DNA of 64,000 bases, taken from positions 124,001 to 188,000 of the IMG/VR virus record IMGVR_UViG_3300027749_002876; one strand, 5' to 3'. The notes beneath the pieces were generated by a model that saw nothing but the letters and a program-made list of their open reading frames with translations, was not told the DNA's origin and did no database searches. How positions within the stretch are numbered: the first letter of the stretch is position 1; each line of letters begins with the position of its first letter. Positions 2,023 to 63,502 of the stretch are shown here, in pieces. Both the position numbers and the translations under genes were made by a program.

Positions 2023-2110
2023 TACCATATAGAAACACACTGGCTTGCAAGACTCCTACTAACCTTTCGATAGATGTCGCAGTTAGTATTCAATGTGTTT
2101 TTATATGGTA
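2023..2110 (-). other. long stem-loop pairing with the 3' ACCA end of tRNA-Lys(TTT)
   Basis: TACCATATAAAAACACATTG...CAGTGTGTTTCTATATGGTA, ~20 bp. Confidence 0.6.
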
Positions 2111-2179
2111 GGGGTGTTCGGGAACGATCCGAATTTTACCGGTTAAAAGCCGGTTACTTCACCTTAAAGTTTCACCCCC
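2106..2179 (-). tRNA. tRNA-Lys(TTT), non-canonical A8/U14 and A54/U58
   Basis: ACCGG-CTTTTAA-CCGGT arm, T-loop ATCGTTC, CCA. Confidence 0.88.
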
Positions 2180-2182
2180 ATA

Positions 2183-2256
2183 TGGTCCCACACCACGGTA
2201 ACGATCCGTGTTTTACCGGTTAAGAGCCGGTTACATCACCTTAATGTTTGTGAGGG
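2183..2256 (-). tRNA. tRNA-Lys(CTT), non-canonical A8/U14 and A54/U58
   Basis: ACCGG-CTCTTAA-CCGGT arm, T-loop ATCGTTA, CCA. Confidence 0.88.
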
Positions 2257-2319
2257 ATGGATTCGTAAATATTTTCTTTTACGTGCCATCCAGGACCATA
2301 CGGGGGTCTAAGATGACAC
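2255..2319 (-). promoter_or_regulatory. putative two-state RNA switch between the MKRSGKR leader and tRNA-Lys(CTT)
   Basis: GTGTCATC/GATGGCAC stem excludes the GGATGG/CCATCC stem that pairs with tRNA nt -4..+2. Confidence 0.6.
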
Positions 2320-2342
2320 TATCGTTTACCTGAACGTTTCAT
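2319..2342 (-). CDS. leader peptide MKRSGKR
   Basis: AAGGAGA SD 5 nt upstream of ATG AAA CGT TCA GGT AAA CGA TAG. Confidence 0.65.
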   Translation of the reverse strand: MKRSGKR

Positions 2343-2363
2343 GTCGTTCTCCTTTTAAAAATT

Positions 2364-2442
2364 TGGTACCCTGCCCCGGAGTCGAACCGAGAAAACTCTT
2401 CCTTTTGAGAGAAGCGACTTTGCCAAATTTGTCTAGCAGGGC
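2364..2442 (-). tRNA. tRNA-Leu(CAA) with short variable region
   Basis: CTTCT-CTCAAAA-GGAAG arm, A73, only 6-nt variable region. Confidence 0.87.
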
Positions 2443-2449
2443 ATATGTT

Positions 2450-2526
2450 TGGTGCGACCGGAGAGATTCGAACTCCCGACTCCTAAGTTCGTAGCCTAGT
2501 ACTCTATCCAACTGAGTTACGGTCGC
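2450..2526 (-). tRNA. tRNA-Arg(ACG)
   Basis: GCGACCG/CGGTCGC acceptor, loop CTACGAA, A20, CCA. Confidence 0.95.
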
Positions 2527-33142: not shown

Positions 33143-33202
33143 AATTTTTTCCTATTATATTATATTTATCTCTTTATCATTTAATACTGTAATTTTACAA
33201 TA

Positions 33203-33895
33203 TTATGGGCTATAATTCAATATTGGGTATGCACTTAAGATCCAACCACGAGGACCATTGTAGTATACCAGTGTTACCGCAGAATCATTGACTCCCAGTA
33301 TATACGCATTAGCATCACCTAATATATTTGCACCGTTTCCGGAAATTGATATTGGGCTTAGATACGCATTACCAGTACCATCAATGATTGTTACTTGATC
33401 ACCAAAACCAGAATCTGAGGGCAACAATACTGTTCTAGAAGTTGTTGTATCTACGATGTATGATTTACCAACCTCCATCAGAACATTATTAGATGTGACT
33501 GATTCAAATAAGGCTGCAGGATCTGGATTACCTACTTCAATCAATTCACCATCAATTACAAAATCACCGTTAATTGTTATAGTGTTTGCAAATAAACCTT
33601 GAAAGTTATCATACACAATGTATGAGGTACCATCTGGAATTAGATAGGGCATAGGGCCCGCAACATTACTAACCGCTGAGGGCACTGCGAATGATAGATT
33701 ACCAGAACCATCAGTTTGCAAGAATTGACCATTTGTACCACCAGTAATAACGATGTTTGCTACGTTACCTAGATTTGCATCGAGACTTACGGTTATAGCA
33801 TCAGTGGTAATATTACCAGCAGAATCAATGATAACAATGTTAGCATTTGATCCTACTGCGAATCCACCTAGCGAACTTAAGGGTTTTTGTGCCAT
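33203..33895 (-). CDS. virion fibre-associated protein
   Basis: GGTNGQFLQTDGSGNLSF; YIVDTT...GDQVTIID...GW domain. Confidence 0.65.
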   Translation of the reverse strand: MAQKPLSSLGGFAVGSNANIVIIDSAGNITTDAITVSLDANLGNVANIVITGGTNGQFLQTDGSGNLSFAVPSAVSNVAGPMPYLIPDGTSYIVYDNFQGLFANTITINGDFVIDGELIEVGNPDPAALFESVTSNNVLMEVGKSYIVDTTTSRTVLLPSDSGFGDQVTIIDGTGNAYLSPISISGNGANILGDANAYILGVNDSAVTLVYYNGPRGWILSAYPILNYSP

Positions 33896-33914
33896 TTTTA
33901 TTCTTTACTAGTTA

Positions 33915-40520: not shown

Positions 40521-40522
40521 GA

Positions 40523-48456: not shown

Positions 48457-50469
48457 TTAATAAGTTGGTAACGCCGCTGTGGGTGGCGTGAAGTTGGCGG
48501 TGTATCTGGCGTATCCCTTGGTGATGCGGAGATCGTCAATGTAGCCATTGAATGCAAATGGATCAAATGCAGTAGCAACGTATTTGAAAGGCACTGTATA
48601 ATTTGTAGAATTAGAACCAGTACTAACCGAAGTTCCGTTTATGTATAATTTCATTGTGCCACTTGACCTTACAACTGCTACGTGATTCCAAGTACTTTGA
48701 GTAACAGTTCCAGTGACTACATTTGTTGTATTGTCTTTCCATCCAATCTGATTTGCAGTACCTGTGTAACCAAAATAAACTAATCCGGTGCCATCTCCGC
48801 TTGTTCTTGAATCTAATAGACCAGCATATGTTGAACCATATGTTAAATTTGGATACATCCACATTTCTACAGTGAAATCTCCAGAACCCAATGGTAGTGT
48901 TGTACTAACAGGTAATAATAACCAATCACCTGAGCCATCAAACGCCATACTTGAACCGCCAAACTTGCTTTGTGCAGTGGATATTTTGGCATCGCCCACT
49001 GTTTCTAATTCGGTAATCATTGCATTGTCAATGATACCAGCGTTGGTGTAGTTGAGTAGTAGGCTTGTGTTTGTGATTGCTGTTAGTGGTGATGTGGGTA
49101 CGGTTACAGTGGTAACACCCGAACCTTTAACTATGCGAAGGTCTTCTATGTATGCTTTTGCATAAACAGGAGCACCGTCATTTGATGCACCAATCAACAA
49201 GGTGCCACTTGTATCGATATTTGCAGTAACAGAAGTTGGTGTCATTGCTGATACACCATTGATAAATTGATACAATGTTCCGCTAACTCGGCTAGTAACT
49301 ACATGAGTCCAGGTATTCAATGGAAAAGTTGAAGTGGTAATATAATTTGTGCCGGTATAAAAATTAAGTTTTCCGGCAGTATCCGTGTACCAAACCCAGG
49401 GAGCAACAGATCCAGTAGTAGTTCGTTTATCAAGTATTCCACTATTACCAGAAAAACTAGTTATATAAATCCACGCTTCTATTGTAAAATCACCAGTACC
49501 TAAATTTAGGGCAGCATTATTGGCCACACTCAAATAATCCCCTGAGCCGTCAAAGTATCCTGACCCACCGATTGTGCTGGCACTGTATGCGGCTGTGGGT
49601 TCGAATGGTGAGAATCGTTGTACAGTTGGTGAACCTGTTAGTGTAATGGCAAAAGTGTTTGCGGAGTTGTCAATGAATCTATTGCTTTGACAGGTTAATA
49701 ATCTTGTACCCGATATAGCAGTCAATGGAGTTGTGCTTGGAGTAAATGCTGATGAATAAACAACTGTATTTGTCAACCGGTAATTAGAAATGTAGCCAGA
49801 AAAATATGTTGGTTGATTGCCTTCAACACCAATATTGTCATTTTGGTTAAGACCAGCGGCTGCTACACCAGTATAAGTTGCAGAAGTTGTACTTAATACC
49901 CCGTTGACATAAATTTTAATTGTAGTGCCATTAATTGTAGCCGCAATATGAGTCCATGTATTAAGTGGAACATCACTTGTAGACGCAGAATCTACATTTT
50001 TATATCCCCCGTCATACCAGTAAAATCTAACAGCTCCATTACGAATACCAAAATTAAAGTATGTTGCACCTTTAGCCTGAACGGGAGAAAACATCCAAGC
50101 AGATGCACCTGTGTTATATGCTGTTGGATACACCCATGCTTCAAATGTGGCAGTTATACCAGTAGCTGAACCTGTACAAAGAAAGTTTGATGCAGTTGTT
50201 CCTGCGGTTAAATAACTGCTACCTGTAAAGAAATTACTCCAATTACTTCCATAAGGACTAAACGTGCCTTGTGTTGTATTACCGTTGCGAGTTATTGCAA
50301 AGTTGTTTGTACTACCATCTAAAAATGTATTGTTCTGTGCAAGATTTGTACCATTCCCTGGTAACAACAATGAGTTGTACATAAAGTATGGGTCGTTTGC
50401 GGCAGCTCCCGAAGGTGCAAACGTCAATCCACCACTAAATGTTATACCTCCGGTTACTGTTACTGTCAT
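48457..50469 (-). CDS. protein with three LamG/concanavalin A-like domains (receptor-binding/appendage)
   Basis: Three copies of (FT/TF)xExWxY...W(T/N)H...(Y/F)(V/I)NG...YI. Confidence 0.85.
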   Translation of the reverse strand: MTVTVTGGITFSGGLTFAPSGAAANDPYFMYNSLLLPGNGTNLAQNNTFLDGSTNNFAITRNGNTTQGTFSPYGSNWSNFFTGSSYLTAGTTASNFLCTGSATGITATFEAWVYPTAYNTGASAWMFSPVQAKGATYFNFGIRNGAVRFYWYDGGYKNVDSASTSDVPLNTWTHIAATINGTTIKIYVNGVLSTTSATYTGVAAAGLNQNDNIGVEGNQPTYFSGYISNYRLTNTVVYSSAFTPSTTPLTAISGTRLLTCQSNRFIDNSANTFAITLTGSPTVQRFSPFEPTAAYSASTIGGSGYFDGSGDYLSVANNAALNLGTGDFTIEAWIYITSFSGNSGILDKRTTTGSVAPWVWYTDTAGKLNFYTGTNYITTSTFPLNTWTHVVTSRVSGTLYQFINGVSAMTPTSVTANIDTSGTLLIGASNDGAPVYAKAYIEDLRIVKGSGVTTVTVPTSPLTAITNTSLLLNYTNAGIIDNAMITELETVGDAKISTAQSKFGGSSMAFDGSGDWLLLPVSTTLPLGSGDFTVEMWMYPNLTYGSTYAGLLDSRTSGDGTGLVYFGYTGTANQIGWKDNTTNVVTGTVTQSTWNHVAVVRSSGTMKLYINGTSVSTGSNSTNYTVPFKYVATAFDPFAFNGYIDDLRITKGYARYTANFTPPTAALPTY

Positions 50470-50478
50470 AATATTCCT

Positions 50479-50916
50479 TTATTCACGGTTCTTTAATATA
50501 CTACGCAACATCCAACTATGTTTTTCGTGTGCGTCTAGTCGTTCAGCAATGAAGTTTGCGATACCTTGTTTGTTCTCATCTTCAGCAGAAACAAAACAAC
50601 CATTTAGTAAATCAATCATCTTTTCATTATCAGATAATAACTCAGCAAACATTAAGTGTGGACGAGGAACTTTAAGTTGGTCCTCAATGATAGTTAGTTC
50701 TGCATAACGTGACAAACTACCCGGTGCATAGCTATCTAGTGTGCGAATATACTCTCCAATCGGGTCAATGGAATTATACACCTCAGCATAAAAATCACCT
50801 AAAAACTTGTGGTATTGCGGGAAGTTATCACCCTCTATATTAAAATGAAAACCATGTATTTTTACATAAAATGCAAAAGTACTACCTAACAATACCTTAA
50901 GATTATCTACTAACAT
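50479..50916 (-). CDS. dps: Dps/ferritin-like DNA protection protein
   Basis: HGFHFNIEG.NF.QYH, D.IGE.IR, HEKHSWML. Confidence 0.9.
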   Translation of the reverse strand: MLVDNLKVLLGSTFAFYVKIHGFHFNIEGDNFPQYHKFLGDFYAEVYNSIDPIGEYIRTLDSYAPGSLSRYAELTIIEDQLKVPRPHLMFAELLSDNEKMIDLLNGCFVSAEDENKQGIANFIAERLDAHEKHSWMLRSILKNRE

Positions 50917-51023
50917 TTGAAATTCCTTATATAACTATATTTATCTATTTTAGCATAAATAAAAGTGAGGATCGCGGTACTGGAAATACCCACCCTCTCT
51001 AATGCTAAAAAGGAGCAATCAGC

Positions 51024-51620
51024 TTGACTATTTATTCAACTTCGGACCATCGTAAGATTTACGAAACACACATTGGTCCAATTCCAAAAGACATAGAAGG
51101 TCGTAGTTATGAAATTCATCATATTGACGGAAATCACAATAACAATGAATTGTCAAATTTATTGTGTGTTTCTATTAGAGAACACTATGAAATACATAAA
51201 TCTCAGGGAGACCTTAAGGCTTGTTTAATTATGTCTCAAAGAATGGGTGTTTCCCCTGAAGAAAAATCACACCTAGCAAAATTATCAAATACAGGAAAAA
51301 ATAATCCAATGTATGGTACTATTTGGATTAACGACGGAATTATTAATAAGAAAATTCGCGGAGATATACCCGAAGGCTGGGCACGAGGCAGATTAATATC
51401 ACACGAACACGCTTCAAAATTTACAAAACGATCCAAAGTTGGTACTAATAACACTAGATTTAATAAGACAATTTATTGTTTTGAGAATATTAAAACACTA
51501 GAACAAATTCATAGTACATCATATGAGTTTGCTATTAAGTATGGAGTTAGCACTGTTGGAATAAGAGGTCTCATTCAAAAAAACAAGACCTCTTATAAGG
51601 GTTGGCGAATGGTTTTTTGA
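51024..51620 (+). CDS. HNH homing endonuclease
   Basis: YEIHHIDGNHNNN..NL...EHYEIH; NUMOD-like GKNNPMYG; opposite strand to neighbours. Confidence 0.85.
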   Translation: MTIYSTSDHRKIYETHIGPIPKDIEGRSYEIHHIDGNHNNNELSNLLCVSIREHYEIHKSQGDLKACLIMSQRMGVSPEEKSHLAKLSNTGKNNPMYGTIWINDGIINKKIRGDIPEGWARGRLISHEHASKFTKRSKVGTNNTRFNKTIYCFENIKTLEQIHSTSYEFAIKYGVSTVGIRGLIQKNKTSYKGWRMVF

Positions 51621-54600
51621 TTATTCATTTCTAGGCAATACGAATACTCTACCGCCTGCTAAAATAGCCATATAGTTTCCTATGCCACGCTCACCCATTA
51701 CAGCTTGGGGGATAACAATTTGTTGCCCGCCGCGTGGTCTGATGCCACCAGGTTCTAACATAATCATTTTATATTCTTGTCCATCAACTGTAACAGTACC
51801 TGCTTGTCTATCAGCACGTTCTGCACGAACTAATCCTTGACCGGGTATAGTTGCAGTAGATGGTGTTGCCGCCGGAGCTGGATCAGTTGCTTGTTGTGTA
51901 GCAGTGGGTTTCATTCCACCTACTTGATTACCGTCAGCATCATATGTTACACGACCGTGTGCGGCACCTGTACCTAATGCCATTGCACCAGTCAATGCGG
52001 CGGCACCTAATTTTTGTTTCCAACCTTCGTCTACATTTTCATTAGACTTTTTCTTTGTATCAACATTGATAGCTTTACCACTACGATCTGGATTAGGATC
52101 TTCTCTACGCTTACGTTGAGCGGCACTTGCACGACCCTTCTTACCTAAACTATGCGCTTTACTTTGAGGCAAGCATTTTGGTTTACCTTCTCCTGGTTCT
52201 CTAGCACACGGACCTTTAATCTTTCCTTTAGTATCCATGCGAACCCATTTTTCTTTGTTGAACCAATCGTGCAAACTTTCATCTGCTTGTTCAATACCTT
52301 CTAGTATAGAACTTTCATTCTTCTTTCCACCGTTGCCCCAGTTACTTGCACCTTTTTTACGACATTTAACTAATGCCCCAGACGCATAAGCACTTGGCCA
52401 TACTTTATAACGACTCTTTACTTTATAGTAGCAAGCATCTTTCTTTTCGTTCATTAGTTCTTCGCTAACCATTTCACCACCACAGTGTGGGCAACTATGT
52501 TGTGCTTCCGCCACACCTTGCTGACCCGGCACTGTATCAACAATGTTTATCATTTTATCAGGAACTATTTGTACAGGAACATTGCCGTTGTATCCGGCGG
52601 CTTGGTATGCGATAAATCTATGATTCCCATCTATTACAAAAAGTTTACCTTTGTTATTCCAAACAACTAACGGACCTAATTTCCCATTTTGTTTTAGTTG
52701 TGGTAAAAGATTGTTATTGACCCATTGAGCAACCTTTGGATCCTTCATTGACTTACCATTTTCCCACATTTGTAATTTATTAAAAGGTGCTTCAGTTACT
52801 GGCAAACTTTTCTTTATCCTGTCATCAACAGTAGCACCTTTATAAGCAGGATTTGTGTAGATAGTTACTAGTTGCTGTTCCAAGGCTTCCGCCACACCTT
52901 GCTGTCCTAGTAATGATTGCACCCAAGGAATGAACGTGTTAATGATCCAGTCATTGTGCTGTTTGCTTTTGTCCAGTGTGCTGGAATCTGCCACACGACC
53001 GTTTATGGTCACAGGCTTGATATTGTTCACAGCATCTGTAATTTTCTTCTGCACAGCAGGATCAGCATCCTTGATAACTGTTTGCAGTCGGCCAGCGGCT
53101 TCACTTTGTCTGCCTTGCATGGCCAACAATGCCACACGTTGCAGATTGGCAAACACAGGATCGCCTAGGTTGTTGAACGCCTTGGTGATACCAGCGGCGG
53201 TGTTATTTTCTGCCACACCTTCCGCCACACCTTCGTTCTTCACACAGTTGGGATATGTTTTTCCAAACATTTTTTTGTTACCTTCTTTGTGATAACCTTT
53301 CCAACAAGCTTCATCTAAATTTTCATGGTCTCCGTGAGTTTCACACATACCACAATCAGGACAAGTCATCTCCATAACATTGTCAATACTTTCATTGTGC
53401 TTCTTCTTACCTGCACAATGAGCCTTTTGACTAAAGCCTTTAGGATGACTACAGTTGATACTGGATTTATATTTTTGACTCCACTCTTCCTCTACATTTT
53501 CAGGCATCATACCGTGTTTTTTAACGTGTGCATCTAACTCATCACGTTGCTTATTCAATTCCTGTATACGTGCTTTGTCACCCATCTGAATAGCGTGTCT
53601 GAGTTTTTCCTGAATACTATCTGCTAAATCCATATAATCATTCATTCTCATTCTAGTAGGAACACTATCATCTTCATCAATACCTTTTGGTTTAGCATAT
53701 GCGGCTTTGTTAGTCAATAATCTATTCTTAACATATTCTAATGCTTTGTCTAGTTTTCTATTCAACTCAACATAGTTATCTCTTGCACCATCACGTGCTA
53801 ACATACCTGTATCAACACCGGCTTCAATGTTTGGTGTCAATAAGCCTTTCTTATCAAGTCTCTGAACTAAGTTATCTAATATACCTTGTTTCTCAATAGC
53901 TTTGTTTAATTGACCTAATCTAGTTTTTAGGTCAGAATGTTTCTCACCTGGCATCGCTACCATAGGACTAGATGTTGCTCTTTGTCTAAGATTAGGTTCT
54001 CTTGCCGTGAACTTAGCAACTGTGTTTTGTTTAAAATCTTTTTCCCACTGTTCTAACTCAGCCATACGTTGTTGTTCAAGTTGTTGTTTAACTTGTTGTA
54101 ATGCTTGTATAGACTTAGATGTTAGTTCATCACCTAAGCTTTCTGGTAATGGTTTATCTAGTTTCTTTATTGGTGGTCTAGTAGGTGGATGATAAGCTGA
54201 TTTAGCTCTATTCTGTGTTCCTAATATTTTAGGATTGTTTACTCTAGGGTAACCAGTTTTGAATGGGTCAATTGGTTGTTCAGTAGCTTCATCCATACCT
54301 TGCTCTATAACTTCTACGAATTTTTTACCAATAGGATTAATATAAGGTTCTGTAGGGTTGAATGTAGCTAGTTTGTGTGCCAATGTTTCTGCCATATCGC
54401 GGCCAGAAATACCATCAGCAACTATTGCACTGCCGGATCTTTTAATTTGATTTAACACGCTAGCTTGTGGGCTGGCTAACTGTGCCCCGTAGCTGTTGAA
54501 ATCTTTTGGAGGATACTGTTTAGGAAATACAGCACTTAGAGCTTCCCAAATTGCGGCGGCTGCAGGGCCACCTCGTCCAAGTGGCCCATATACTTTGATA

Positions 54601-55142
54601 GCAAAACCATGACTAGGTGGTTTGTTAGTAGCAGGCGCAGTGAATGTTTCTACATCACCTTCAAACTCATTTATTCCCTGGCTGATGCTAGATTTCTTTT
54701 TATCATTATCAAATTGTTTCTTAGTTGCTTTAACAATACCACTAAAACGTTTGTTACCACGCTTATGATTACCTTCACTGTCAGCCTTACTTGCATCAGA
54801 CGCAGCCGCTGTTTTATATTGACTTAACTTGGTGTTAGATAATTCATCTAGTTGAGATTCCGCTACACTGCGACTTACTAATCCAACTTCTAATTCTGGA
54901 CGCTTTGCTAATAGTGATTGTCTTGCTTTTAATGCTTGTTCTTTACTAGCAAACGTAACTGTCTTGCCATCTTTACTCCAAACTTTGCCATTAATCTTTA
55001 ACGCCCATTCTTGTTTAGATGGTTGCTGAACATCTAAATCGTGTCGTTCATCATCTCTTGGACCGCGACTGAAGCCAGTACGATTATCACCATATCTTCT
55101 ATGTGTAGCTTCGTTTAATAAACCTTTAAGAATTTTACTCAT
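51621..55142 (-). CDS. modular head-associated polyprotein including a ParB/Srx-like module
   Basis: Short modules separated by (V/L/I)xE and QQGVAE linkers; PLVV...VIDGNHR. Confidence 0.7.
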   Translation of the reverse strand: MSKILKGLLNEATHRRYGDNRTGFSRGPRDDERHDLDVQQPSKQEWALKINGKVWSKDGKTVTFASKEQALKARQSLLAKRPELEVGLVSRSVAESQLDELSNTKLSQYKTAAASDASKADSEGNHKRGNKRFSGIVKATKKQFDNDKKKSSISQGINEFEGDVETFTAPATNKPPSHGFAIKVYGPLGRGGPAAAAIWEALSAVFPKQYPPKDFNSYGAQLASPQASVLNQIKRSGSAIVADGISGRDMAETLAHKLATFNPTEPYINPIGKKFVEVIEQGMDEATEQPIDPFKTGYPRVNNPKILGTQNRAKSAYHPPTRPPIKKLDKPLPESLGDELTSKSIQALQQVKQQLEQQRMAELEQWEKDFKQNTVAKFTAREPNLRQRATSSPMVAMPGEKHSDLKTRLGQLNKAIEKQGILDNLVQRLDKKGLLTPNIEAGVDTGMLARDGARDNYVELNRKLDKALEYVKNRLLTNKAAYAKPKGIDEDDSVPTRMRMNDYMDLADSIQEKLRHAIQMGDKARIQELNKQRDELDAHVKKHGMMPENVEEEWSQKYKSSINCSHPKGFSQKAHCAGKKKHNESIDNVMEMTCPDCGMCETHGDHENLDEACWKGYHKEGNKKMFGKTYPNCVKNEGVAEGVAENNTAAGITKAFNNLGDPVFANLQRVALLAMQGRQSEAAGRLQTVIKDADPAVQKKITDAVNNIKPVTINGRVADSSTLDKSKQHNDWIINTFIPWVQSLLGQQGVAEALEQQLVTIYTNPAYKGATVDDRIKKSLPVTEAPFNKLQMWENGKSMKDPKVAQWVNNNLLPQLKQNGKLGPLVVWNNKGKLFVIDGNHRFIAYQAAGYNGNVPVQIVPDKMINIVDTVPGQQGVAEAQHSCPHCGGEMVSEELMNEKKDACYYKVKSRYKVWPSAYASGALVKCRKKGASNWGNGGKKNESSILEGIEQADESLHDWFNKEKWVRMDTKGKIKGPCAREPGEGKPKCLPQSKAHSLGKKGRASAAQRKRREDPNPDRSGKAINVDTKKKSNENVDEGWKQKLGAAALTGAMALGTGAAHGRVTYDADGNQVGGMKPTATQQATDPAPAATPSTATIPGQGLVRAERADRQAGTVTVDGQEYKMIMLEPGGIRPRGGQQIVIPQAVMGERGIGNYMAILAGGRVFVLPRNE
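52504..52904. repeat. 20-bp direct repeats GCTTCCGCCACACCTTGCTG (52504-52523, 52885-52904) flanking the ParB-like module
   Basis: Exact match; partial copies at 53211-53233. Confidence 0.85.
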
Positions 55143-55143
55143 A

Positions 55144-56214
55144 TTACTTCTTACCAGTTATTTTATCTACGGCACGGTCAATACCAGCCTGACGTTTTTC
55201 AATCTTGGCATCTTTTTCAAAACGACTTGCAGGTAATTTTGAATTGAAAGCGGAAGTAGCTACTCTAGCACCTTTCTGAAACTGTGTATCACCTTTACGG
55301 TTAGCCATATCACCTGATGCTGATTTTACATAACTACCTAATGCTTTTGGACTTAATTCGTCAAGTTGACTCTCACCCATTTCACCATTGGTCATAGCAC
55401 CAGTAGTACCTAAACTTTCATTAGCACCTTGCTGACCATATGCATCAATCATTTGCCTAATATAGAAATTATAAAAACCACGACGGCTATTGTATTCTCT
55501 ATCTCCTAATACAGTCTTTAGTGCCTTTACAGCATCATTTACATCTGAACCACGCATTATTTTTAATGCATCAGTAACAAGTGAATCAACTCTATCATTG
55601 CCTTCATTCATAGCATCTGGATCAGTTTGCATTTCTTTTGCGCTGATTAAGTAATCCATAACTGTTACCATGTTACTCTTTACAGCACCAATCTTTTCTG
55701 AAACCCATTCTGGGAAGTTATCTCTAGTCGATAGCTCTTTATCTAAATGACTTGCTACACGAACAATAGTATGTAAACTATTTTTTAATGTTTCACCTTC
55801 GTGTTCTGATTTATCAGGATCGTGCTTAACAAAACCAGACTTTTTTAAACGACCTTGACCAGGAACAACTATTAAATCTTGTTCGCTTAAATCAGTTTCA
55901 TTGACTGGTGGTGCGGGTCTTTGTTGAGGCTGCTTATTCATTGAAGCCTTCATTTCTTCTCTACTTTTACCGTATTTCTTTTGAAATTCAGCTGGTTTCA
56001 TATTCTGTAAGTCATATGCTAAATCTTTCATTGCGGCTTCGTTTAAACTGTTAGCAAATGCTTTATTAGTTTTCTTGCCTTTAAGTAGATTACCTACTTT
56101 ATTGCCACCATAAACACTTGGATTACGTGTTTGCATTTTGACAAAACCCATTTCAGTGGGTGCAACTGAACCTGCTGTTGTGCTTGTTTCTTGGATAATT
56201 TGACTGATTTTCAT
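55144..56214 (-). CDS. modular head-associated protein
   Basis: MKISQIIQE N-terminus; ESQLDELS module shared with the neighbouring gene. Confidence 0.65.
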   Translation of the reverse strand: MKISQIIQETSTTAGSVAPTEMGFVKMQTRNPSVYGGNKVGNLLKGKKTNKAFANSLNEAAMKDLAYDLQNMKPAEFQKKYGKSREEMKASMNKQPQQRPAPPVNETDLSEQDLIVVPGQGRLKKSGFVKHDPDKSEHEGETLKNSLHTIVRVASHLDKELSTRDNFPEWVSEKIGAVKSNMVTVMDYLISAKEMQTDPDAMNEGNDRVDSLVTDALKIMRGSDVNDAVKALKTVLGDREYNSRRGFYNFYIRQMIDAYGQQGANESLGTTGAMTNGEMGESQLDELSPKALGSYVKSASGDMANRKGDTQFQKGARVATSAFNSKLPASRFEKDAKIEKRQAGIDRAVDKITGKK

Positions 56215-56264
56215 ATGGAATCCCGTTTGATATAGTATTTATCAAAATACCATATTAACGAAAC

Positions 56265-58685
56265 TTAAGAGATTTTGCCGTTTGCTTTTGCTGTAGGAGG
56301 AACGCCGGCTCTACTAGTTAACCAACCAAACGCTTTTGCGTTCTTTTTGATACTGTAGGGATTAACATCTACTGTTAGTGCTGTCTTAAATCGTGGATCG
56401 TTTTTTTGTTTTTCACTTGGTATATAACCTGAGGCTTCATTAATTGGCTGTTTTAATATTTCAATGACTTTATCTGCGGCGGCTTTTAATGCTTGGTCAT
56501 ATCCCATTTCTTCTGCTTCTTTATCACTTTTACCTAAGAATGGTTTAAGCATACTTTTAGCAACATTTAACCTTACTTTTTCCTCGTCAGGTTGATTGTA
56601 CACCCGTTGTAATTGGCTTTCACGTTGAAAATAGCTAGACCATCCAATAGCATCAGCTAATCCTTGTATATCGTATCGTCTATGTTGTAGTGTTGGATTA
56701 CGATTATCAAACATCTTATGCTGTTTAATAATTCGTGGATCTAACACAACGCCTTGTGTTGGTTCATTGTGAGCAATCCAACCACCACCATCGTCATACA
56801 CACTGGTAAAGCCTAAATCACGCAATACTTTATTCCAACGAACAACATTAGTTTCATCATTTTGTCCTAGTCTACTTAAGCAGTCGTAGATAAACCAGTA
56901 TGGCGTATCATCATATTCATCTTCTTCACTTGCTTGTTGTATTACTTCTTCTGGGCAATATTGAAGTAATGCTTGTTTTAGTTTGGCAGGATCAACTTTG
57001 GTTTGTTTAGTCATTTCGCCTGAACGGTTATACTGAAACAACTGTAGATAGGGGAAGTTATCTCCCCATGGTAGTGATTCATCACGGTCAGCCATTTGCA
57101 TAAAATATTGCAATGGATAAAAGTAAATACCTTTAGGTGTGTCTTCGCTAACAGCCGCACGTGGGTTAATGCCTAACTTAGGCTCCATAGTCATACTAAC
57201 AGCCCAGTTATCTTTATCACTGATATTATCTTCAGCGTAATTAATAAGGTCATATTTTCCAGAGCCACTTTTTCTATTCTGTTCTGGGTTTCTACGTGCT
57301 TCTGCTACATCTTTCTTTACCCTACTCAATTCGTAGATAACTTTATTGCCGGTGTCTGCTCTAAATGCTTTAAAGCCCCAAGACTTAGAATAACGCTGAA
57401 CTAATTTGTCATATAGATTAGCTCTGCTTTGTGAGTCGTGTCCGGTGTCATCTACTTTGTTTGCAGAAAAGGTTATTTTATTGGGCGTATACTCTTTAAT
57501 AAATGTTTGTATAGCACTTAACACAGTGGCAAATACACGTTGTTGATCACCTTCGCCGGTGACTTCTTGGCTATTGTTTCTCCAAAACTCAACACTCCAT
57601 GCTTCCTCTTTTGAATCTTTACTAAATCCCTTGTTAAACATAATACTTAGAAAAGTTCCGTCATCTAATCGTGCTATTGCATCTACATCACCATAGTCAC
57701 CCTTTTCCCACCGAAGTACTTCATACGGTTTATCAAAACTTTCTTCTAATCCAATTTTAGCTAATTTGTTGTAATAATGAGGATCTTCGCCAATATGGTC
57801 TAGTGCAATTTTACGTGCAATATTACGTTCACTTGTATGCTCTAATTCAACTTTGATTCCTTTGTCTAACTGTATCAATATATCACGTTTAGGTACTTTA
57901 TACTTGATAACAAGTTGCTCAATAGTAGGAGTAGTTTTATACATCAGTTCATTATCTTCTTCAACGGAATACATACCTTCAATACTCAATCGTTGGCTAT
58001 GTAGCTTGTCCCGTAAATCATATAATTTAGTAATAACACCCTGACTACGTAACACTTTATAAGCTAGGTTCTCTGGGCCAAACTCACCACCAAAGTCCAA
58101 TCCAGCTTGGCGATATCGTTTGATAGTATCTAATACGTTTTTTACCTTACTTAAATCTTTTGAATGTAATGCATATTCTATTATTTTAGCTAACTTTTCA
58201 TACTTCTGCTTAGTAGCAGTTTGGTCTAAGTTGCTTCTACGTTTACTGGGGACTCTGATCCATTTGTTCTTTATTATACTATATTCACCTAAACTAATTA
58301 CCGGTAAATTTGCATCCTGAACATATAACTCTACTGGAATTCCATTGATAGTGATATCATGTGATTCATTATACAGATTCTTTTTAGCGTGAAACAGTTC
58401 TTGGTAAACTGCATCATCTGAGTATTGAGTTAAATCCACTAAGATATGTAAATCTAAATCACTATTGGGAGTGTAACTAAATGCCGCATTACTGCCGGAT
58501 ATAGTAATATCTTTAACGTCTAAGTCTTTGACACCTAATTCAGAAATAAAATCTTGTGCAATAACTTTAAGTTGTTCATCAACATCAGGACGTAGTTGTT
58601 GCCCATGAAATAACTTAGGGTTAAGTTGGTCGTGAAATGCTATTGCATCTGACATTTTAAATGAGTCGAGTTCTTTTAGGTCCAT
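56265..58685 (-). CDS. polyvalent protein: pol-beta-type nucleotidyltransferase, DUF5661-like and further modules
   Basis: GSNA...SDLDLH; GIKVELEH...IALDH..EDPHYY; TPKGIYFYP...EPTQGVVLDP. Confidence 0.7.
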   Translation of the reverse strand: MDLKELDSFKMSDAIAFHDQLNPKLFHGQQLRPDVDEQLKVIAQDFISELGVKDLDVKDITISGSNAAFSYTPNSDLDLHILVDLTQYSDDAVYQELFHAKKNLYNESHDITINGIPVELYVQDANLPVISLGEYSIIKNKWIRVPSKRRSNLDQTATKQKYEKLAKIIEYALHSKDLSKVKNVLDTIKRYRQAGLDFGGEFGPENLAYKVLRSQGVITKLYDLRDKLHSQRLSIEGMYSVEEDNELMYKTTPTIEQLVIKYKVPKRDILIQLDKGIKVELEHTSERNIARKIALDHIGEDPHYYNKLAKIGLEESFDKPYEVLRWEKGDYGDVDAIARLDDGTFLSIMFNKGFSKDSKEEAWSVEFWRNNSQEVTGEGDQQRVFATVLSAIQTFIKEYTPNKITFSANKVDDTGHDSQSRANLYDKLVQRYSKSWGFKAFRADTGNKVIYELSRVKKDVAEARRNPEQNRKSGSGKYDLINYAEDNISDKDNWAVSMTMEPKLGINPRAAVSEDTPKGIYFYPLQYFMQMADRDESLPWGDNFPYLQLFQYNRSGEMTKQTKVDPAKLKQALLQYCPEEVIQQASEEDEYDDTPYWFIYDCLSRLGQNDETNVVRWNKVLRDLGFTSVYDDGGGWIAHNEPTQGVVLDPRIIKQHKMFDNRNPTLQHRRYDIQGLADAIGWSSYFQRESQLQRVYNQPDEEKVRLNVAKSMLKPFLGKSDKEAEEMGYDQALKAAADKVIEILKQPINEASGYIPSEKQKNDPRFKTALTVDVNPYSIKKNAKAFGWLTSRAGVPPTAKANGKIS

Positions 58686-58692
58686 ACAGTAT

Positions 58693-59340
58693 TTATCTCT
58701 GCATTAATAGGTCAACAAACTCTAATAGTAGTGTATGATGTTTCTCCTGATGCCAGTGTTTATTGATATATTGCCATGGTTTTTGATACCAATATTCCTG
58801 ACTTTCTAAATGACAGCCTATTAATCCTATTCTATTTTGTATGATAGCCATTGGATCGCCGTTAGCATATGTTGATATTGTTGTGAATTTATCACTATTT
58901 CCTATCATTGCACATCCATCATAAAAAAACATATTTTCATTGTTACCATTCCATATTACCGATGCTACTGTACCATAAGATTTTTTAATGTCGCTAGTTG
59001 GTCTCTTAATGTATTGTACTGGCTCAACGTTATCAAGTATGTCAAAATAATAACTTCCGGCCCAATATGCCCCCATACATATTCCCAAATATCTACCGCC
59101 ATTACTAATGTAATCAGCAAATTTGTTTTGTATTTTTCTTCTAAAAAATTTATCATAAGAACTAGCGTCTCCTATTCCTCCTGGAAATGATACCATATCA
59201 TATGATTCTAAATTAATAGTGCTACATTCATCAAATGAGAATAAAGTAATAGCATATGAATTAGATAGTGCTTTTATCATACCTTCACAACAATCCTTAC
59301 TACATTCAGGATGGTTTATGAATAATGCTATTGTTTTCAT
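58693..59340 (-). CDS. BPL_N-like / class I glutamine amidotransferase-like protein
   Basis: FPGG, GGRYLGICMGAY, GCHLE. Confidence 0.8.
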   Translation of the reverse strand: MKTIALFINHPECSKDCCEGMIKALSNSYAITLFSFDECSTINLESYDMVSFPGGIGDASSYDKFFRRKIQNKFADYISNGGRYLGICMGAYWAGSYYFDILDNVEPVQYIKRPTSDIKKSYGTVASVIWNGNNENMFFYDGCAMIGNSDKFTTISTYANGDPMAIIQNRIGLIGCHLESQEYWYQKPWQYINKHWHQEKHHTLLLEFVDLLMQR

Positions 59341-59347
59341 TTAGTTA

Positions 59348-60058
59348 CTAACTCCAGTATTTAGATGAGTCTAAACTATCCCAATATCTTTTATTATTGC
59401 GGTTGATGAAGTTTTTAATTAAGTAAGTAGCCATACCAAAGTATCCCATCTTTTTAAATCTACGACTGTCCTGTCCAAAATAGTGATTGACAATACTAAA
59501 CTTTTTAGGACTATACATTCTGGATAGGAAATAATCTTCAGACGTTACTGTCTTTTCGGGGAAACCACCCAATTCTTCAAACTTGTCCCTGCGAGTCAAC
59601 ATAAATGCTCCAATTGCAAAGGGTGAGAAATATTTCAGTATATGGTTTATAATATTAAAGATAGTAAATCCAATACTTGCACGTATATCGTTGTCATAAG
59701 ACTTGATGTTTAATCCAACCAGATCCAATTGATTAACTTCTATTTCTCTAACAGCATCTTTAATTACATCATTTTTAAAAAAACGTACATCGGCGTCAAT
59801 GAATAGTATGTATGGTGTTGTAACTAATTTAGCTCCATTGTTCTTAGCAATAGAAACAGGGCCACCTTCAATAACTTCCACGTTCAATGAATAACTATTA
59901 TCTTTTATAACGTGTCTGGTATTATCAGTAGAACAGTCTGCAATGATAATTCTAGTATCACCGATGTATTGTAAACGCAGTGATTCTAATAAATGATGGA
60001 TATAATTTTCCTCATTTTTGCAAGGAACTACGATAGTAATTTTATCACTGACTTTCAT
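59348..60058 (-). CDS. glycosyltransferase family 2
   Basis: IVVPCKNEE, DCSTDNT, FIDAD, SEDY. Confidence 0.9.
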   Translation of the reverse strand: MKVSDKITIVVPCKNEENYIHHLLESLRLQYIGDTRIIIADCSTDNTRHVIKDNSYSLNVEVIEGGPVSIAKNNGAKLVTTPYILFIDADVRFFKNDVIKDAVREIEVNQLDLVGLNIKSYDNDIRASIGFTIFNIINHILKYFSPFAIGAFMLTRRDKFEELGGFPEKTVTSEDYFLSRMYSPKKFSIVNHYFGQDSRRFKKMGYFGMATYLIKNFINRNNKRYWDSLDSSKYWS

Positions 60059-60225
60059 TTCTTTACACACTTTCCTTCAATTTTAAATTGATTAAATTTT
60101 AACCAATATGTCATACTTTGTAGACTTTGTTCACATGCCACTCGGTCCTGAAACATCAACTCCACTCTCGCCGGCACGTCTTTTGAGTCGTTTAAGTGAA
60201 CTGCCATTAACATCAATATCCACAT
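60055..60225 (-). CDS. small protein MWILMLMAVHLNDSKDVPARVELMFQDRVACEQSLQSMTYWLKFNQFKIEGKCVKK
   Basis: Translated by hand; AAGGAG SD; ATGA overlap with the GT2 start. Confidence 0.55.
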   Translation of the reverse strand: MWILMLMAVHLNDSKDVPARVELMFQDRVACEQSLQSMTYWLKFNQFKIEGKCVKK

Positions 60226-60973
60226 TGTCCTTCTCCTTAGTCCAGGTTACTATTTCCCAACTACCATTGTGATGTTCTACTAATGCTGTACAACTTTCAA
60301 CCCAGTCACCATCATTCATGTAGATGACACCATCTATCTCTTTAATCTCTGCGTGGTGTATATGTCCACATATGACACCATCATAACCACGTTTTTTACA
60401 ATAACCTGCCAAGTTCTTTTCAAACTGGAACATGAAGTCTATTGCTTTTTTTACTTTGTATTTAATATATTTACTAAGACTAAAATACCCAAAACCCATG
60501 CGATGACGGATCCAATTGAATTTGCTATTAAGCGATAAAATAAAGTCATATGCTTTGTCTCCTAAAAATGCTATCCAGGGTGCTAATCTAGTAATGCCAT
60601 CAAACAAGTCACCGTGTGTAACTAGATAATGCTTCCCATCAATACCTATATGTTCTATTTGATTGTGTATCTCTACTAGACCAAAGCTAAAACCATATGG
60701 TATCATTGGTCTGAGAAACTCATCGTGATTGCCTGCTATATAAACAACTCTAGTTCCTCGTTTAGCATGTCCTAATACCCTACGAACAACGTTAGTATGA
60801 CTTTGTTTCCAACGCCATTTATTCTGTTGTATGCGCCATGCATCAATGATATCACCCACAAGATATAATGTGTCGCAGGTGTTGTGTTTAAGAAAGTTGT
60901 TTAACTTATCCGCTTTACTATCTTTAGTACCAAGATGAACATCACTAACAAAGATAGAGCGGTATGTTTTCAT
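60131..60973 (-). CDS. UDP-2,3-diacylglucosamine hydrolase-like metallophosphoesterase
   Basis: SDVHLG, VGDIID, GNHD, HGD, CGHIH, NDGDW. Confidence 0.88.
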   Translation of the reverse strand: MKTYRSIFVSDVHLGTKDSKADKLNNFLKHNTCDTLYLVGDIIDAWRIQQNKWRWKQSHTNVVRRVLGHAKRGTRVVYIAGNHDEFLRPMIPYGFSFGLVEIHNQIEHIGIDGKHYLVTHGDLFDGITRLAPWIAFLGDKAYDFILSLNSKFNWIRHRMGFGYFSLSKYIKYKVKKAIDFMFQFEKNLAGYCKKRGYDGVICGHIHHAEIKEIDGVIYMNDGDWVESCTALVEHHNGSWEIVTWTKEKDNVDIDVNGSSLKRLKRRAGESGVDVSGPSGM

Positions 60974-61022
60974 CTTGTATTTATTTGTAATATTATGACA
61001 AATATGTGACAAGATAGCCATT

Positions 61023-61045
61023 AAAAAAGCCCCTTTCGGGGCTAG
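61023..61045 (-). terminator. intrinsic terminator
   Basis: AGCCCC-GAAA-GGGGCT-TTTT. Confidence 0.8.
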
Positions 61046-61046
61046 T

Positions 61047-61970
61047 TTAAGTTTGAATCGTAACGTTTCCGTCTGCATCCGGAACAGCTTGTTCTGCTAA
61101 CTTTTTCGCTTGTTCTTCGGCATACATAGGTCCGATTGTGTTCATCAAGTGTTGTTGATTTTCCATGCAGAATACATATGATCCTGAATGACGTAACAAT
61201 ACACGTTTATCCATCCAGATACGACCGCCCATATCACGCCAGTTTTCGCAGAATGTCCAGTCTTCACTGTAGTAACGATTCTGACGAACTGCTGTATCAA
61301 AGTAAGTCTTCAAGTGTTGGTCATACTTTGGATCTAAACCAATGTCGTTCTTATACTGCTTAACTGCAGGATGAGTCTTCATCTTCTCAAATACATGTTT
61401 CTTCATTAATAAGAAACCTGTACCTGCCTTAGATACTTCTTGTAAGCCATCTGGTCCTTCTTCAGCACCTTCAAATCCATTGACTACCCATTTGATTGGC
61501 ATAGTCTTCATAGGGTATAGTCCACCGATAACATCTACGTCACGGTTCAATAATACTAATAGATGCCATGGCTCCCAACCAATGTCTGCATCAACAAAGA
61601 ATAAGTGTGTTGCATCTGGCATGTCCAAAAACTTTGCAGTTAGTGTATTACGTGCCCGGCTAATGAGTGATTCATTGACCATTGTTTCTAATGTCCAATC
61701 GATACCAAGTTGACGGGCTGTGTTTGCCCACTTAATAAATGACATAAATGTAGATTCGGTTAGCATACCACCATAACATGGCATTGCAATATGTACTTTA
61801 GTTGTACGTAGAAAATCTACGTTAACTTGTACTTGTCCGGGAGTTGCGGCAGCTGGAGTTTCCGTTGGTGCAGCCGGGGGATTTTCAGCCGCTTGTTGGG
61901 CTATTTCTTGTACCTGTTCGACGGGTATTGTTTTTTCTTCAGTTGTTGCTTTGGTTTTTTTAGTTGCCAT
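61047..61970 (-). CDS. glycosyltransferase-like protein (GT-A fold)
   Basis: IAMPCYGG, ESLISRARN, FVDADI, GTGFLL, SEDWTFC. Confidence 0.8.
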   Translation of the reverse strand: MATKKTKATTEEKTIPVEQVQEIAQQAAENPPAAPTETPAAATPGQVQVNVDFLRTTKVHIAMPCYGGMLTESTFMSFIKWANTARQLGIDWTLETMVNESLISRARNTLTAKFLDMPDATHLFFVDADIGWEPWHLLVLLNRDVDVIGGLYPMKTMPIKWVVNGFEGAEEGPDGLQEVSKAGTGFLLMKKHVFEKMKTHPAVKQYKNDIGLDPKYDQHLKTYFDTAVRQNRYYSEDWTFCENWRDMGGRIWMDKRVLLRHSGSYVFCMENQQHLMNTIGPMYAEEQAKKLAEQAVPDADGNVTIQT

Positions 61971-62026
61971 GTGGTCCTCTTAAATGATGTAATTATTTAC
62001 ACTAGTTAAGAGGTGCCGAAATATTT

Positions 62027-63502
62027 TTATTTTTCGTCTAAGTAATCTTCATTTAGTCCTAAATCGCTATGAGGGAAAGCTATATAGCTATCGCCGTGCT
62101 CATCACCTATTCTAATGACAAATACTCCCGCATCGTCATCCCCGGATTCATTTTGTCCTATTTCCCAGCCCATTGAGTGTAATGTTTGTTGGGCTTGCCT
62201 CATTTGTTGCTCAGTACCATTCCACCACATTGCGGCTAACTTACGTAGTATTTCTTCATCAGGCTCTCTATCATCACTGCCGTTAGGGGCAAACTCTGTC
62301 AAATCAGTTATACGCATTGGCCCTCTACGTTTGAACTTATTGTTCTCTTGTTCATATGTAGTGGGGTAAGGAATACCTAAGCTCTCATCAACTTCACTGC
62401 CTGTAATAGCTTGCAACAAAGCACGTGCAACTACACGATCCTTTTCCTTTTCATCTTCAGGAAGTTGACTATAAGATTGCATAGCTAACTTAGCACGTTT
62501 TAATTTCTTCTCATCTGGTGTGGGAGTATCTAACTGTAGTTGGCCTTTATAGTCAGCTGCCGCTGTTACATTCCAACCTTTGTGAATAGCATCACTGATA
62601 GCTTCAATATCGGTTACACCTGCATCAATTAGTCGCTTTGCGGCTTTTGCTGATTGCATATTTGCCATCCAACCAAAGTTTGCACCCGGTGTACTACGAC
62701 CATAATGGTAGGCGTCATCTAACGCTTTATCGCTGATATGTGCAAGTTGTTCTACTGATAGACTTGCACCCTCTTTTACTTCTCGCGGTTTAATATGATT
62801 TATAACTGCTGGGGTTTTCTTCTCAGGAGGAATATATACATGTTGTTTAGGCTGTGTTACTGTTTTTTGGATAGGCACTGATTTTACTACTGGATCAACT
62901 TTGATATTCTCTGCTAACTCATTACCCATACCCATGTCTAACATTTTAACAACATTGGCAGCAAGCTTAGGGTTCTTTTGAGTGACTGGATATAAACTCA
63001 TAACCATTGCAGTCTTACGTTTATCATTCAATGTAGGCCAAGCATCACGTATCTCACTTGCACTTGTGATACCAGGACCAAACTCTACTGTAGGTAGATA
63101 TGTAATATATGCATGTTTGCTGAATGGTTGTAACCTTTTAGGTGGCCATGGTTGGAAGTAAGCCGGACTGCCATCTTTCTTCGTCCCACCTGGCTTAGGT
63201 TGTTCATTCTTATCTTTCTCACTACGAACAAAGATTAATACATCTTCGTTAGGATTGTAATGACTTGTGATTTCTTCTGCTTTGAAAGGACTTTTAACTT
63301 GTACAAAGTGTTTGTCAGCAACACCTGCAAGTTTTGCTAGTTTCTCTTTGATACTAAAAGGAAATGGTCTTGTTTTTGTATCATTGGTGGCGGCTACGTA
63401 TACATCAGCATCAGGAAAAGCCTTGATAGCACTTTGATACAGTGAAGCATGTCCTGCGTGAAACGGATGAAAGCCTCCCGGCATGACTACAATTTGTCTC
63501 AT
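62027..63502 (-). CDS. HxGH cytidylyltransferase-like domain plus RyR-like module
   Basis: PGGFHPFHAGH; SASEIR; AIHKGW...YSQLPEDEKEKDR. Confidence 0.75.
   Translation of the reverse strand: MRQIVVMPGGFHPFHAGHASLYQSAIKAFPDADVYVAATNDTKTRPFPFSIKEKLAKLAGVADKHFVQVKSPFKAEEITSHYNPNEDVLIFVRSEKDKNEQPKPGGTKKDGSPAYFQPWPPKRLQPFSKHAYITYLPTVEFGPGITSASEIRDAWPTLNDKRKTAMVMSLYPVTQKNPKLAANVVKMLDMGMGNELAENIKVDPVVKSVPIQKTVTQPKQHVYIPPEKKTPAVINHIKPREVKEGASLSVEQLAHISDKALDDAYHYGRSTPGANFGWMANMQSAKAAKRLIDAGVTDIEAISDAIHKGWNVTAAADYKGQLQLDTPTPDEKKLKRAKLAMQSYSQLPEDEKEKDRVVARALLQAITGSEVDESLGIPYPTTYEQENNKFKRRGPMRITDLTEFAPNGSDDREPDEEILRKLAAMWWNGTEQQMRQAQQTLHSMGWEIGQNESGDDDAGVFVIRIGDEHGDSYIAFPHSDLGLNEDYLDEK

Follow-up and report, generated by a model that had tools for sequence, protein, structure and literature searches.

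Modular chains of a giant environmental phage carry predicted prohead-protease sites at their joints

The internal proteins of phage T4 are textbook anti-defence cargo, injected with the phage DNA, and are known as single small proteins. The locus described here raises the question of whether other phages might produce such cargo as long chains that are cut apart in the head. It lies in a 64,000-nucleotide stretch (hereafter the window) corresponding to bases 124001-188000 of a 524,565-bp IMG/VR virus record (IMGVR_UViG_3300027749_002876), and it comprises four open reading frames (ORFs), P0001 to P0004, whose positions are given in Table 1. A first-pass annotation, made from the letters of the window, had described these ORFs as strings of unrelated modules joined at (L/I/V/M)-x-E motifs (hereafter phi-x-E) and had proposed that they are matured in the head into many small effectors delivered at infection. 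T4 gp21 cleaves after L/I-x-E, and T4 internal proteins are loaded by a 10-residue capsid-targeting sequence (CTS) (PMC9026906, PMC3012670).

We demonstrate below that P0001 to P0004 are modular chains with joints at phi-x-E. We further consider it probable, at roughly 0.62, that they are polyproteins made late in infection, that CTS-like peptides bring at least P0001 and P0002 into the prohead, and that a gp21-type protease cuts the joints to yield many small cargo proteins.

Results

Joints between modules coincide with a hydrophobic-x-Glu motif

All four ORFs were found where they had been annotated, on the minus strand, which carries all genes of the region (translation table 11 throughout), and they contain each of the motifs that had been listed for them (LLNE, VAE, LDE, INE, MDE, VDE, VKE, and LEE). 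The background density of phi-x-E in the proteome is 1.42 per 100 amino acids. The density in P0001 is 2.56 (30 motifs observed vs approximately 16.7 expected), and the values for P0002 (2.25), P0003 (1.74), and P0004 (1.63) are judged not distinguishable from background. The bare count of motifs is weak evidence for joints. The narrower pattern G-phi-x-E occurs eight times in P0001 where about 0.9 are expected.

The positional evidence for joints at phi-x-E is strong. Breakpoints were determined by BLAST comparison with 62 related loci, recovered in a scan of IMG/VR, and with paralogs in the same genome. The related loci keep the gene order P0003-P0002-P0001 and shuffle the module content, and both they and the in-genome paralog carry the same modules reordered. 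Breakpoints cluster at motifs in P0001 (residues 95/100, 159, 490, 552, 641/645, 879, and 1039), P0003 (243, 315, 462, and 750), and P0004 (198, 244, 373, and 403). All-against-all comparison put 36% of the internal breakpoints no more than three residues from a phi-x-E, vs 14% of random positions. Moreover, three modules are preceded by the motif in every context or nearly so, namely the Cys module containing WSQKYK (15 of 15), the C-terminal module of P0003 (14 of 15), and a module containing FDxPY (8 of 8). Across these contexts, P1 is always Glu and P3 always hydrophobic, and P2 is varied. An alignment of collinear, full-length P0001 relatives revealed that the junction Glu is conserved and that P2 and P3 are variable; a fragment-based MAFFT alignment of P0001 was misaligned and was discarded. 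Because joints other than GVAE keep only the hydrophobic-x-Glu pattern, with a free P2 position and varying codons, the constraint on them is at the level of the peptide.

Shuffling is also evident within the genome itself, where a diverged second cassette (genome 4.4-14.5 kb) holds the same modules arranged differently and carries different inserts. An ESQLDELS..L..Y module that had been noticed in two genes is indeed present in both, at residues 95-110 of P0001 and 281-296 of P0002.

The phage encodes a T4-type prohead protease with matching candidate substrates

A head operon in T4 order is located at genome positions 350-357 kb and consists of genes for a gp20 portal, an acidic core protein, a gp21-type protease, a scaffold, and a gp23-type capsid protein. 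The protease matches Pfam Peptidase_S77 (PF03420; E 1.9e-27) and is 35% identical to T4 gp21. The adjoining 367-residue scaffold contains 27 phi-x-E motifs, and L-A-E43/S of the capsid protein (a slash marks a cut, actual or predicted) aligns with L-T-E65/A of T4 gp23, which is the gp23 cleavage site. Together with the breakpoints and junction contexts, these features indirectly support the first-pass view that the ORFs are modules joined at gp21-type sites. The nearest isolates by capsid protein, at 62-67% identity, are Vibrio phage 2.275.O, Sinorhizobium phage Phosso, Pseudomonas phage PA5oct, and the Rak2-like coliphages; a search for nearly identical DNA among isolated phages gave no match to the region.

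N-terminal peptides resemble T4 targeting sequences

The N-termini of P0001 and P0002, which had been likened to T4 capsid-targeting sequences, are both present (Table 1). Sequence comparison supports their designation as putative counterparts of the targeting peptides of T4 IPII and IPIII, which begin MKTYQEFIAE/A, and of gp24. Starts of the form M[KR]xx[EQ]-phi-phi-x-E, a pattern selected post hoc after the data had been seen, occur in 9-10 proteins of the genome, P0002 among them, vs 0.1 expected (for example MRIKEFINE/A and MRATEFLIE/A). ORFs of other contigs that hold the linker described below are enriched for such starts (43% vs 20%).

The commonest joint is fixed at the nucleotide level

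The commonest joint, QGVAE, is encoded by one identical 13-mer, GGTGTGGCGGAAG, which includes codons that are rare in the genome (GTG, 9%; GCG, 6%) and which recurs in hundreds of contexts among environmental phage contigs. There are three copies in P0001, all at GVAE joints, and one in the paralog; elsewhere in the 524-kb genome there are none, aside from the copy of P0001 at the contig end. The 672 kb of related loci contain 62 copies, all in frame and in more than 40 different contexts, and GVAE has the identical 12-base spelling in 62 of its 95 occurrences there. A 15-mer, AAGGTGTGGCGGAAG, was found in at least 119 IMG/VR stretches, and among the matches listed, 165 of 180 lie in the GVAE frame within ORFs of at least 150 codons.

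One relative reads NCVKNE-GVAE-EQHSC at the place where P0001 holds two extra modules. Because relatives differ by whole modules between two linkers, the linker is also a place of module gain and loss. Candidate explanations for its fixed spelling are recombination, a site-specific enzyme, and a role at the RNA level.

Structure models place the joints outside confident folds

In the AlphaFold model of P0003 (mean predicted local distance difference test score, pLDDT, 55), residues 20-233 and 320-458 are folded, and the low-confidence segments 234-255, 270-317, 459-563, and 746-756 contain all four joints. Residues 318-458 match GNAT acetyltransferases (Z 8.4, root-mean-square deviation 3.1 Å over 111 residues), and the top 50 rows of the fold search are all GNAT-type proteins or domains except for the antizyme chain 4zgy_B. 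The GNAT fold therefore fills the space from joint 315 to joint 462. Note that the top Foldseek matches of P0003 are to ICL2; an assignment as isocitrate lyase was rejected because the match is to the GNAT-like C-terminal domain of that protein.

The P0001 model (mean pLDDT 49, with two-thirds of it below 50) is folded at approximately 100-151, 341-482, 497-546, and 648-709. All conserved P0001 joints lie outside these segments, but since the model is mostly of low confidence, their location in linkers is a weak test for this protein. A fold search with the P0001 model returned only generic helical-hairpin matches (Z <10), which are uninformative. The claim that joints avoid folded domains is supported for P0003 and, more weakly, for P0001, although several phi-x-E motifs do fall inside modules. 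Searching PDB sequences with profiles built from the P0003 and P0001 alignments gave no match, and the P0004 profile gave only weak phosphopantetheine adenylyltransferase matches (E about 0.04).

Signal peptides directly follow joints

In the in-genome paralog of P0003, a Tat motif (SRRGFLK, a hydrophobic stretch, and AKA) begins two residues past VDE/ and precedes a Peptidase_M48 module (1.6e-8). Across the family, this paralog included, a Tat-like SRRxFLK is located 2-3 residues past a phi-x-E in seven of eight ORFs. Similarly, the Sec-like signal GWKQKLGAAAL...AHA/R that opens the last P0001 module stands behind a phi-x-E in four of four cases. A signal peptide that lies hundreds of residues from the start of a chain is understandable only with cleavage at that point. 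A related contig (L146) encodes at 11404-12042 (-) a 212-residue protein in which a CTS-like MRAIEFLVE is followed by a Tat signal and then by GRGYVQLTG, which on our own reading of the letters, with no family search run, is a lysozyme (GH19-type) motif. This protein may be a capsid-loaded, export-competent wall hydrolase.

Late-type promoter motifs and virion evidence from relatives

Among words upstream of genes in this genome, GATAAATA, which is a variant form of the T4 late promoter TATAAATA, shows the highest enrichment. It is found before P0002 and P0003 (Table 1), and the late-type motif also precedes the P0003 paralog, the head operon, and large structural genes; large virion-like genes lie near the cassette. 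The exact T4 word is absent before the cassette and head genes, where the variant [GCT]ATAAATA is present. Genome-wide, [GCT]ATAAATA is located 12-35 nt before 98 genes, and a sigma-70-like TTGACA-N15-19-TA[TA]AAT, including TTGACA-N17-TATAAT, precedes 34 mostly small genes. The two classes look like late and early promoters, respectively.

Mass spectrometry of purified virions of cyanophage S-CREM2 detected the products of the adjacent ORF154, ORF155, and ORF156 (PMC10665884). S-CREM2 ORF156 is 36% identical (E 7e-38) to the nucleotidyltransferase module of P0003, and ORF154 is a cytidylyltransferase with the N-terminus MKNFSSFLTE/A. P0004 was considered as an ortholog of the latter; their similarity amounts to 28% identity across just 53 residues around HxGH. 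The two are members of one superfamily, and orthology is unsupported. Another cyanophage protein, T4-GC0119, is homologous to the small Cys/basic modules of P0001 and has the last two P0001 mini-modules in reverse order. By annotation, it is a structural and hence virion-associated protein.

Module content of the four ORFs

The features of the cassette are collected in Table 1. Two or more domains of disparate activity are present per chain in P0003 and P0004, and there are about 13 modules in P0001; the P0002 stop codon is 1 nt from the P0001 start. The predicted P0001 pieces are mostly 49-156 residues long, with isoelectric points (pI) of 9.2-10.0 for nine of the 13. Its three mini-modules all contain Cys, and the two larger ones are basic. 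Pfam and PHROG scans gave scattered matches, mostly to uncharacterised families (DUF5872, DUF5661, DUF6934, CTP_transf_like, and PHROGs 727, 3477, 26930, and 36119).

The list of effectors first assigned to these chains stands in part. The nucleotidyltransferase, the HxGH transferase, and the Cys-rich modules were recovered, and the ParB-like module shows weak, sub-threshold similarity (E 0.018). The suggested ADP-ribosyltransferase was not borne out, having a sub-threshold Atlas lead (0.87) only and no Pfam match even at E 1.

Table 1. Positions of the four ORFs, their modules, and associated motifs in the window (residue numbers refer to the ORF named)
Feature	Position	Strand	Basis or remark
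P0001, 1173 residues, about 13 modules	51621..55142	-	ORF list, translation, comparison with relatives
CTS-like P0001 N-terminus MSKILKGLLNE/A	55110..55142	-	L/I-x-E conserved in 11/11 aligned relatives
P0001 96-159, LDELS..L..Y helical module	54666..54857	-	recurs in P0002; N-terminal in in-genome paralog
P0001 553-641, Cys-rich module (WSQKYK), 7 Cys	53220..53486	-	partly recurs in cyanophage T4-GC0119 protein
13-mer GGTGTGGCGGAAG, GVAE, joint 641, second GVAE next	53219..53231	-	
13-mer GGTGTGGCGGAAG, QQGVAE/A, joint 752	52886..52898	-	
P0001 753-879, module with weak ParB-like similarity below Pfam cut-off	52506..52886	-	Pfam E 0.018; PHROG 5e-5
13-mer GGTGTGGCGGAAG, QQGVAE/A, joint 879	52505..52517	-	
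P0001 mini-modules 880-899, 900-948, 949-1039	52026..52505	-	match DUF5872 and PHROG 727
P0001 1040-1173, C-terminal module, opens with Sec-signal-like GWKQKLGAAAL... right behind NVDE/	51624..52025	-	
P0002, 356 residues; 1-204 conserved, C-terminal modules differ among relatives	55144..56214	-	
CTS-like P0002 N-terminus MKISQIIQE/TSTT	56188..56214	-	resembles T4 gp24 propeptide MAKINELLRE/STTT
P0002 282-356, second LDELS..L..Y copy	55147..55371	-	
GATAAATA, T4-late-promoter-like motif	56236..56243	-	29 nt upstream of P0002 start
P0003, 806 residues, five modules	56265..58685	-	
P0003 1-243, Pol-beta-type nucleotidyltransferase module, GS...DLD motif	57957..58685	-	
P0003 244-315, DUF5661 module	57741..57956	-	
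P0003 316-462, GNAT-fold module, DUF6934-related	57300..57740	-	fold search, model
P0003 463-750, module of unassigned function	56436..57299	-	Atlas lead 0.87 to ART-PolyVal cluster as sole hint
P0003 basic 56-residue C-terminal module; always last, always behind phi-x-E/AS	56268..56435	-	
GATAAATA, late-promoter-like motif	58690..58697	-	12 nt upstream of P0003 start
P0004, 491 residues: HxGH nucleotidyltransferase module, then at least three more modules	62027..63502	-	
P0004 1-198, cytidylyltransferase-like HxGH module	62909..63502	-	Pfam CTP_transf_like above cut-off

Genomic surroundings

Between P0003 and P0004 (58693-61970) there are single-domain enzyme genes of an ordinary kind and no polyproteins, the genes encoding a BPL_N/GATase-like protein, a family-2 glycosyltransferase, a metallophosphoesterase, and a protein with no Pfam match. 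A neighbouring gene product of 703 residues that is rich in phi-x-E was rejected as a polyprotein and is a ClpB-like AAA+ protein. This ClpB/ClpA-like double AAA+ chaperone gene (64778-66889 in window numbering, partly beyond the window) is followed by a J-domain protein gene, and the paralogous region that opens the contig holds a second copy of each. That region (genome 1-14.5 kb) is inverted, has about 78% DNA identity to window 51.6-64 kb and beyond, and contains a radical-SAM/SPASM gene between the P0003 and P0002 paralogs.

The last 4.1 kb of the contig (genome 520477-524565) is a 99.6% identical copy of window 48924-53012 (genome 172924-177012). It spans a baseplate-wedge-like gene, a gene for a DNA-binding protein, and the 3' part of P0001, and the contig ends within it, so that it is either a true second copy or an assembly join within a repeat. 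A 129-residue ORF on the plus strand (51231-51620), which abuts the 3' end of P0001, has a weak NUMOD3 match below the cut-off (a homing-endonuclease DNA-binding family) and occurs in the contig-end copy too. Judging from this match, it may be the remnant of a mobile endonuclease.

Elsewhere in the window, 12 clustered tRNA genes (353-2526, minus strand) specify Phe, Val, Thr, Gln, Ile, Met, His, Ser, Lys (two), Leu, and Arg. The gene for the large subunit of a class Ia ribonucleotide reductase (25960-28278) adjoins very large ORFs of 1458, 2201, and 848 residues (28766-43069), which have few or no PHROG matches and late-type promoter motifs upstream. A single ORF of 5889 residues occupies genome 311466-329135 (minus strand). 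Paralogs of about 310 residues with internal repeats and about 70% DNA identity are present in many copies, five of them directly 3' of the capsid gene (genome 356776-361735) and others at 218-220, 270-278, 287, 358-361, 452-455, 512, and 518 kb; they may be decoration or fibre proteins.

Discussion

We infer cleavage at the joints, packaging, ejection, and roles for the pieces in this phage, and the order of events would be as follows. An N-terminal capsid-targeting peptide of 9-11 residues would draw P0001 and P0002 into the assembling prohead core. The gp21-type serine protease, cutting after (L/I/V/M)-x-Glu, would take off the targeting peptide and would also cut between modules at the same motif, releasing many small proteins that would remain with the DNA and enter the next host on infection. 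The released set would include basic Cys-containing peptides, a nucleotidyltransferase, a GNAT-fold module, and an HxGH nucleotidyltransferase, and in relatives it would extend to peptidase and lysozyme modules with Tat or Sec signals. The linker would double as an exchange joint for modules between genes and between phages.

Several observations weigh against this mechanism. P0003 (MDLKELDSF...) and P0004 (MRQIVVMPGG...) have no CTS-like start, and the head operon is about 170 kb distant from the cassette. The phi-x-E motif is short, and modules that are folded or conserved themselves contain several copies (for example at P0003 residues 37, 49, 134, 170, and 398). Since QGVAE is identical at the nucleotide level, part of its conservation is not due to peptide selection. 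Both AlphaFold models are poor overall, at the mean pLDDT values of 55 and 49 given above.

One alternative is that the chains are never cut, being multidomain proteins of the "polyvalent" type in which phi-x-E and QGVAE form a flexible linker kept for recombination shuffling and only coincidentally resemble protease sites. A linker conserved as DNA with rare codons is not required by peptide selection, and large multidomain virion proteins of the polyvalent type have been described (PMC5512222). Nevertheless, we find this explanation improbable because the non-GVAE joints show the peptide-level constraint noted above, because Tat and Sec signals located 0-3 residues past joints would be useless in an intact chain, and because the N-terminal propeptides, the capsid-protein site, and the scaffold sites bear the same motif. 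We give equally little credence to the idea that the chains are cut but their products are not delivered. In that case, the phage protease or another Glu-specific protease would act in the producing cell, where the modules would function late and those with signals would go to the periplasm, or else the pieces would be core or scaffold material that is lost before DNA packaging. Tat and Sec signals normally serve in the cell of synthesis, and their position behind joints could instead indicate that the chains are cut in the cell that makes them; late promoter motifs occur as well, and fragments of T4 gp22, gp67, and gp68 mostly exit the head (PMC9026906). Set against this are the CTS-like starts, which favour prohead targeting, the action of T4 gp21 on proheads at head maturation (PMC9026906), and the persistence of nucleotidyltransferase-module homologs in purified S-CREM2 virions. 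Enzyme modules are, moreover, improbable as scaffolds.

Most P0001 pieces are small and basic (pI 9-10), and instead of acting as anti-defence effectors they may be internal proteins that associate with the DNA. In its stronger form, this idea holds that they are mainly DNA-condensing, charge-neutralising peptides that help to pack a 524-kb genome. The pI range of nine of the 13 pieces and the structural annotation of their cyanophage counterpart T4-GC0119 agree with it, and about 1000 copies of internal protein are embedded in the DNA of each T4 head (PMC3012670). However, it leaves unexplained both the enzyme modules of P0003 and P0004 and the rapid turnover of modules, a typical trait of conflict genes. 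We regard the stronger form as rather unlikely, and it is compatible with packaging and cleavage of the chains rather than exclusive of it.

Building on the preferred reading, in which the chains are packaged, cut, and injected, we tentatively advance a broader proposal that we rather doubt will hold in full. In this environmental jumbo-phage clade, the standard joint (Q)GVAE/G with its fixed word CAAGGTGTGGCGGAAGG would serve both as a prohead-protease site and as a DNA homology patch for module swapping, giving combinatorial capsid-cargo cassettes, and cargo whose Tat or Sec signal becomes N-terminal only after cleavage would be re-exported to the periplasm of the new host. We know of no precedent for re-export of an injected protein by host Tat or Sec, which counts against this last step and also against the preferred reading.

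If the chains are indeed packaged and cut, they would show giant phages loading dozens of cargo proteins from few genes and renewing them quickly, by way of a universal joint that serves proteolysis and recombination alike. A simple rule could then be applied to thousands of giant-phage ORFs now labelled "hypothetical", in which cutting at phi-x-E joints gives the true functional units. The CTS, the standard linker, and the protease would also supply natural parts with which to load capsids with foreign proteins, and the idea is raised of injected proteins with export signals for the next host.

Our literature search turned up no account of phage polyproteins joined at prohead-protease sites, nor any of the QGVAE linker. 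Several known systems share part of the design. Polyvalent proteins have many domains per chain; head packaging and injection are predicted for them, as for the present chains, and processing by an embedded zincin peptidase has been proposed (Iyer et al. 2017, PMC5512222). Both they and the chains described here combine many unrelated domains in one polypeptide, including nucleotidyltransferase, GNAT, ParB-like, and zincin-type domains. However, the polyvalent class is anchored on MuF, Alt-type ADP-ribosyltransferase (ART), DarB, N4 virion RNA polymerase (vRNAP), and similar domains. None of the anchors (MuF, Alt-like/ART-PolyVal, DarB-type, vRNAP, or ArdC) was found in P0001-P0004 by Pfam or PHROG, the Atlas value of 0.87 being a hint only. 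No embedded zincin-like metallopeptidase is present in the four window ORFs, the Peptidase_M48 module being in the in-genome paralog of P0003. The chains also differ from polyvalent proteins in that a T4-type prohead protease is predicted to act at standard sites between modules, many of which are only 20-90 residues long.

In the giant phages phiKZ and SPN3US, the gp21-related proteases gp175 and gp245, respectively, cut many head-internal proteins after Glu, some of them multiply, and the products are ejected (PMC9026906, PMC10052503). The giant genome, the gp21-related protease, and the (here predicted) cleavage at Glu sites are shared with the phiKZ-like inner-body proteins, whereas the lineage of the present phage, by its gp23 capsid protein, is T4-type (PA5oct, Rak2-like, Vibrio phage 2.275.O) and not phiKZ. 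The phiKZ protease site has small P3 residues (S/A/G-x-E), unlike the hydrophobic P3 found here. To our knowledge, shuffled cassette polyproteins have not been described for phiKZ-like phages.

The cyanophage proteins T4-GC0119 and S-CREM2 ORF156 are true single-module homologs, the former of the P0001 Cys/basic mini-modules and the latter of the P0003 nucleotidyltransferase; they are short, with one to few modules, whereas the chains here run to 800-1200 residues and contain a standard linker. RNA-virus polyproteins likewise derive many products from one ORF through a virus-encoded protease and short conserved sites, as predicted here, but the virus class and the protease are unrelated, and in our case the predicted cleavage is in the prohead and yields accessory cargo rather than replication machinery.

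Along with the polyvalent proteins, the closest comparison is T4 IPI, IPII, IPIII, and Alt. The T4 system and the present one both have a protease of the gp21 family, cleavage (predicted here) after hydrophobic-x-Glu, and a short N-terminal peptide (MKTYQEFIAE/A vs MRIKEFINE/A and MKISQIIQE/T), and in each the cargo consists of basic proteins or enzymes, varies strongly, and is made late. T4 cargo is nevertheless single-module and trimmed at one or both ends, whereas the chains described here have up to approximately 13 modules with internal sites; their modules are shuffled between genes and between phages, their commonest site is fixed in the DNA, and some of their modules carry export signals.

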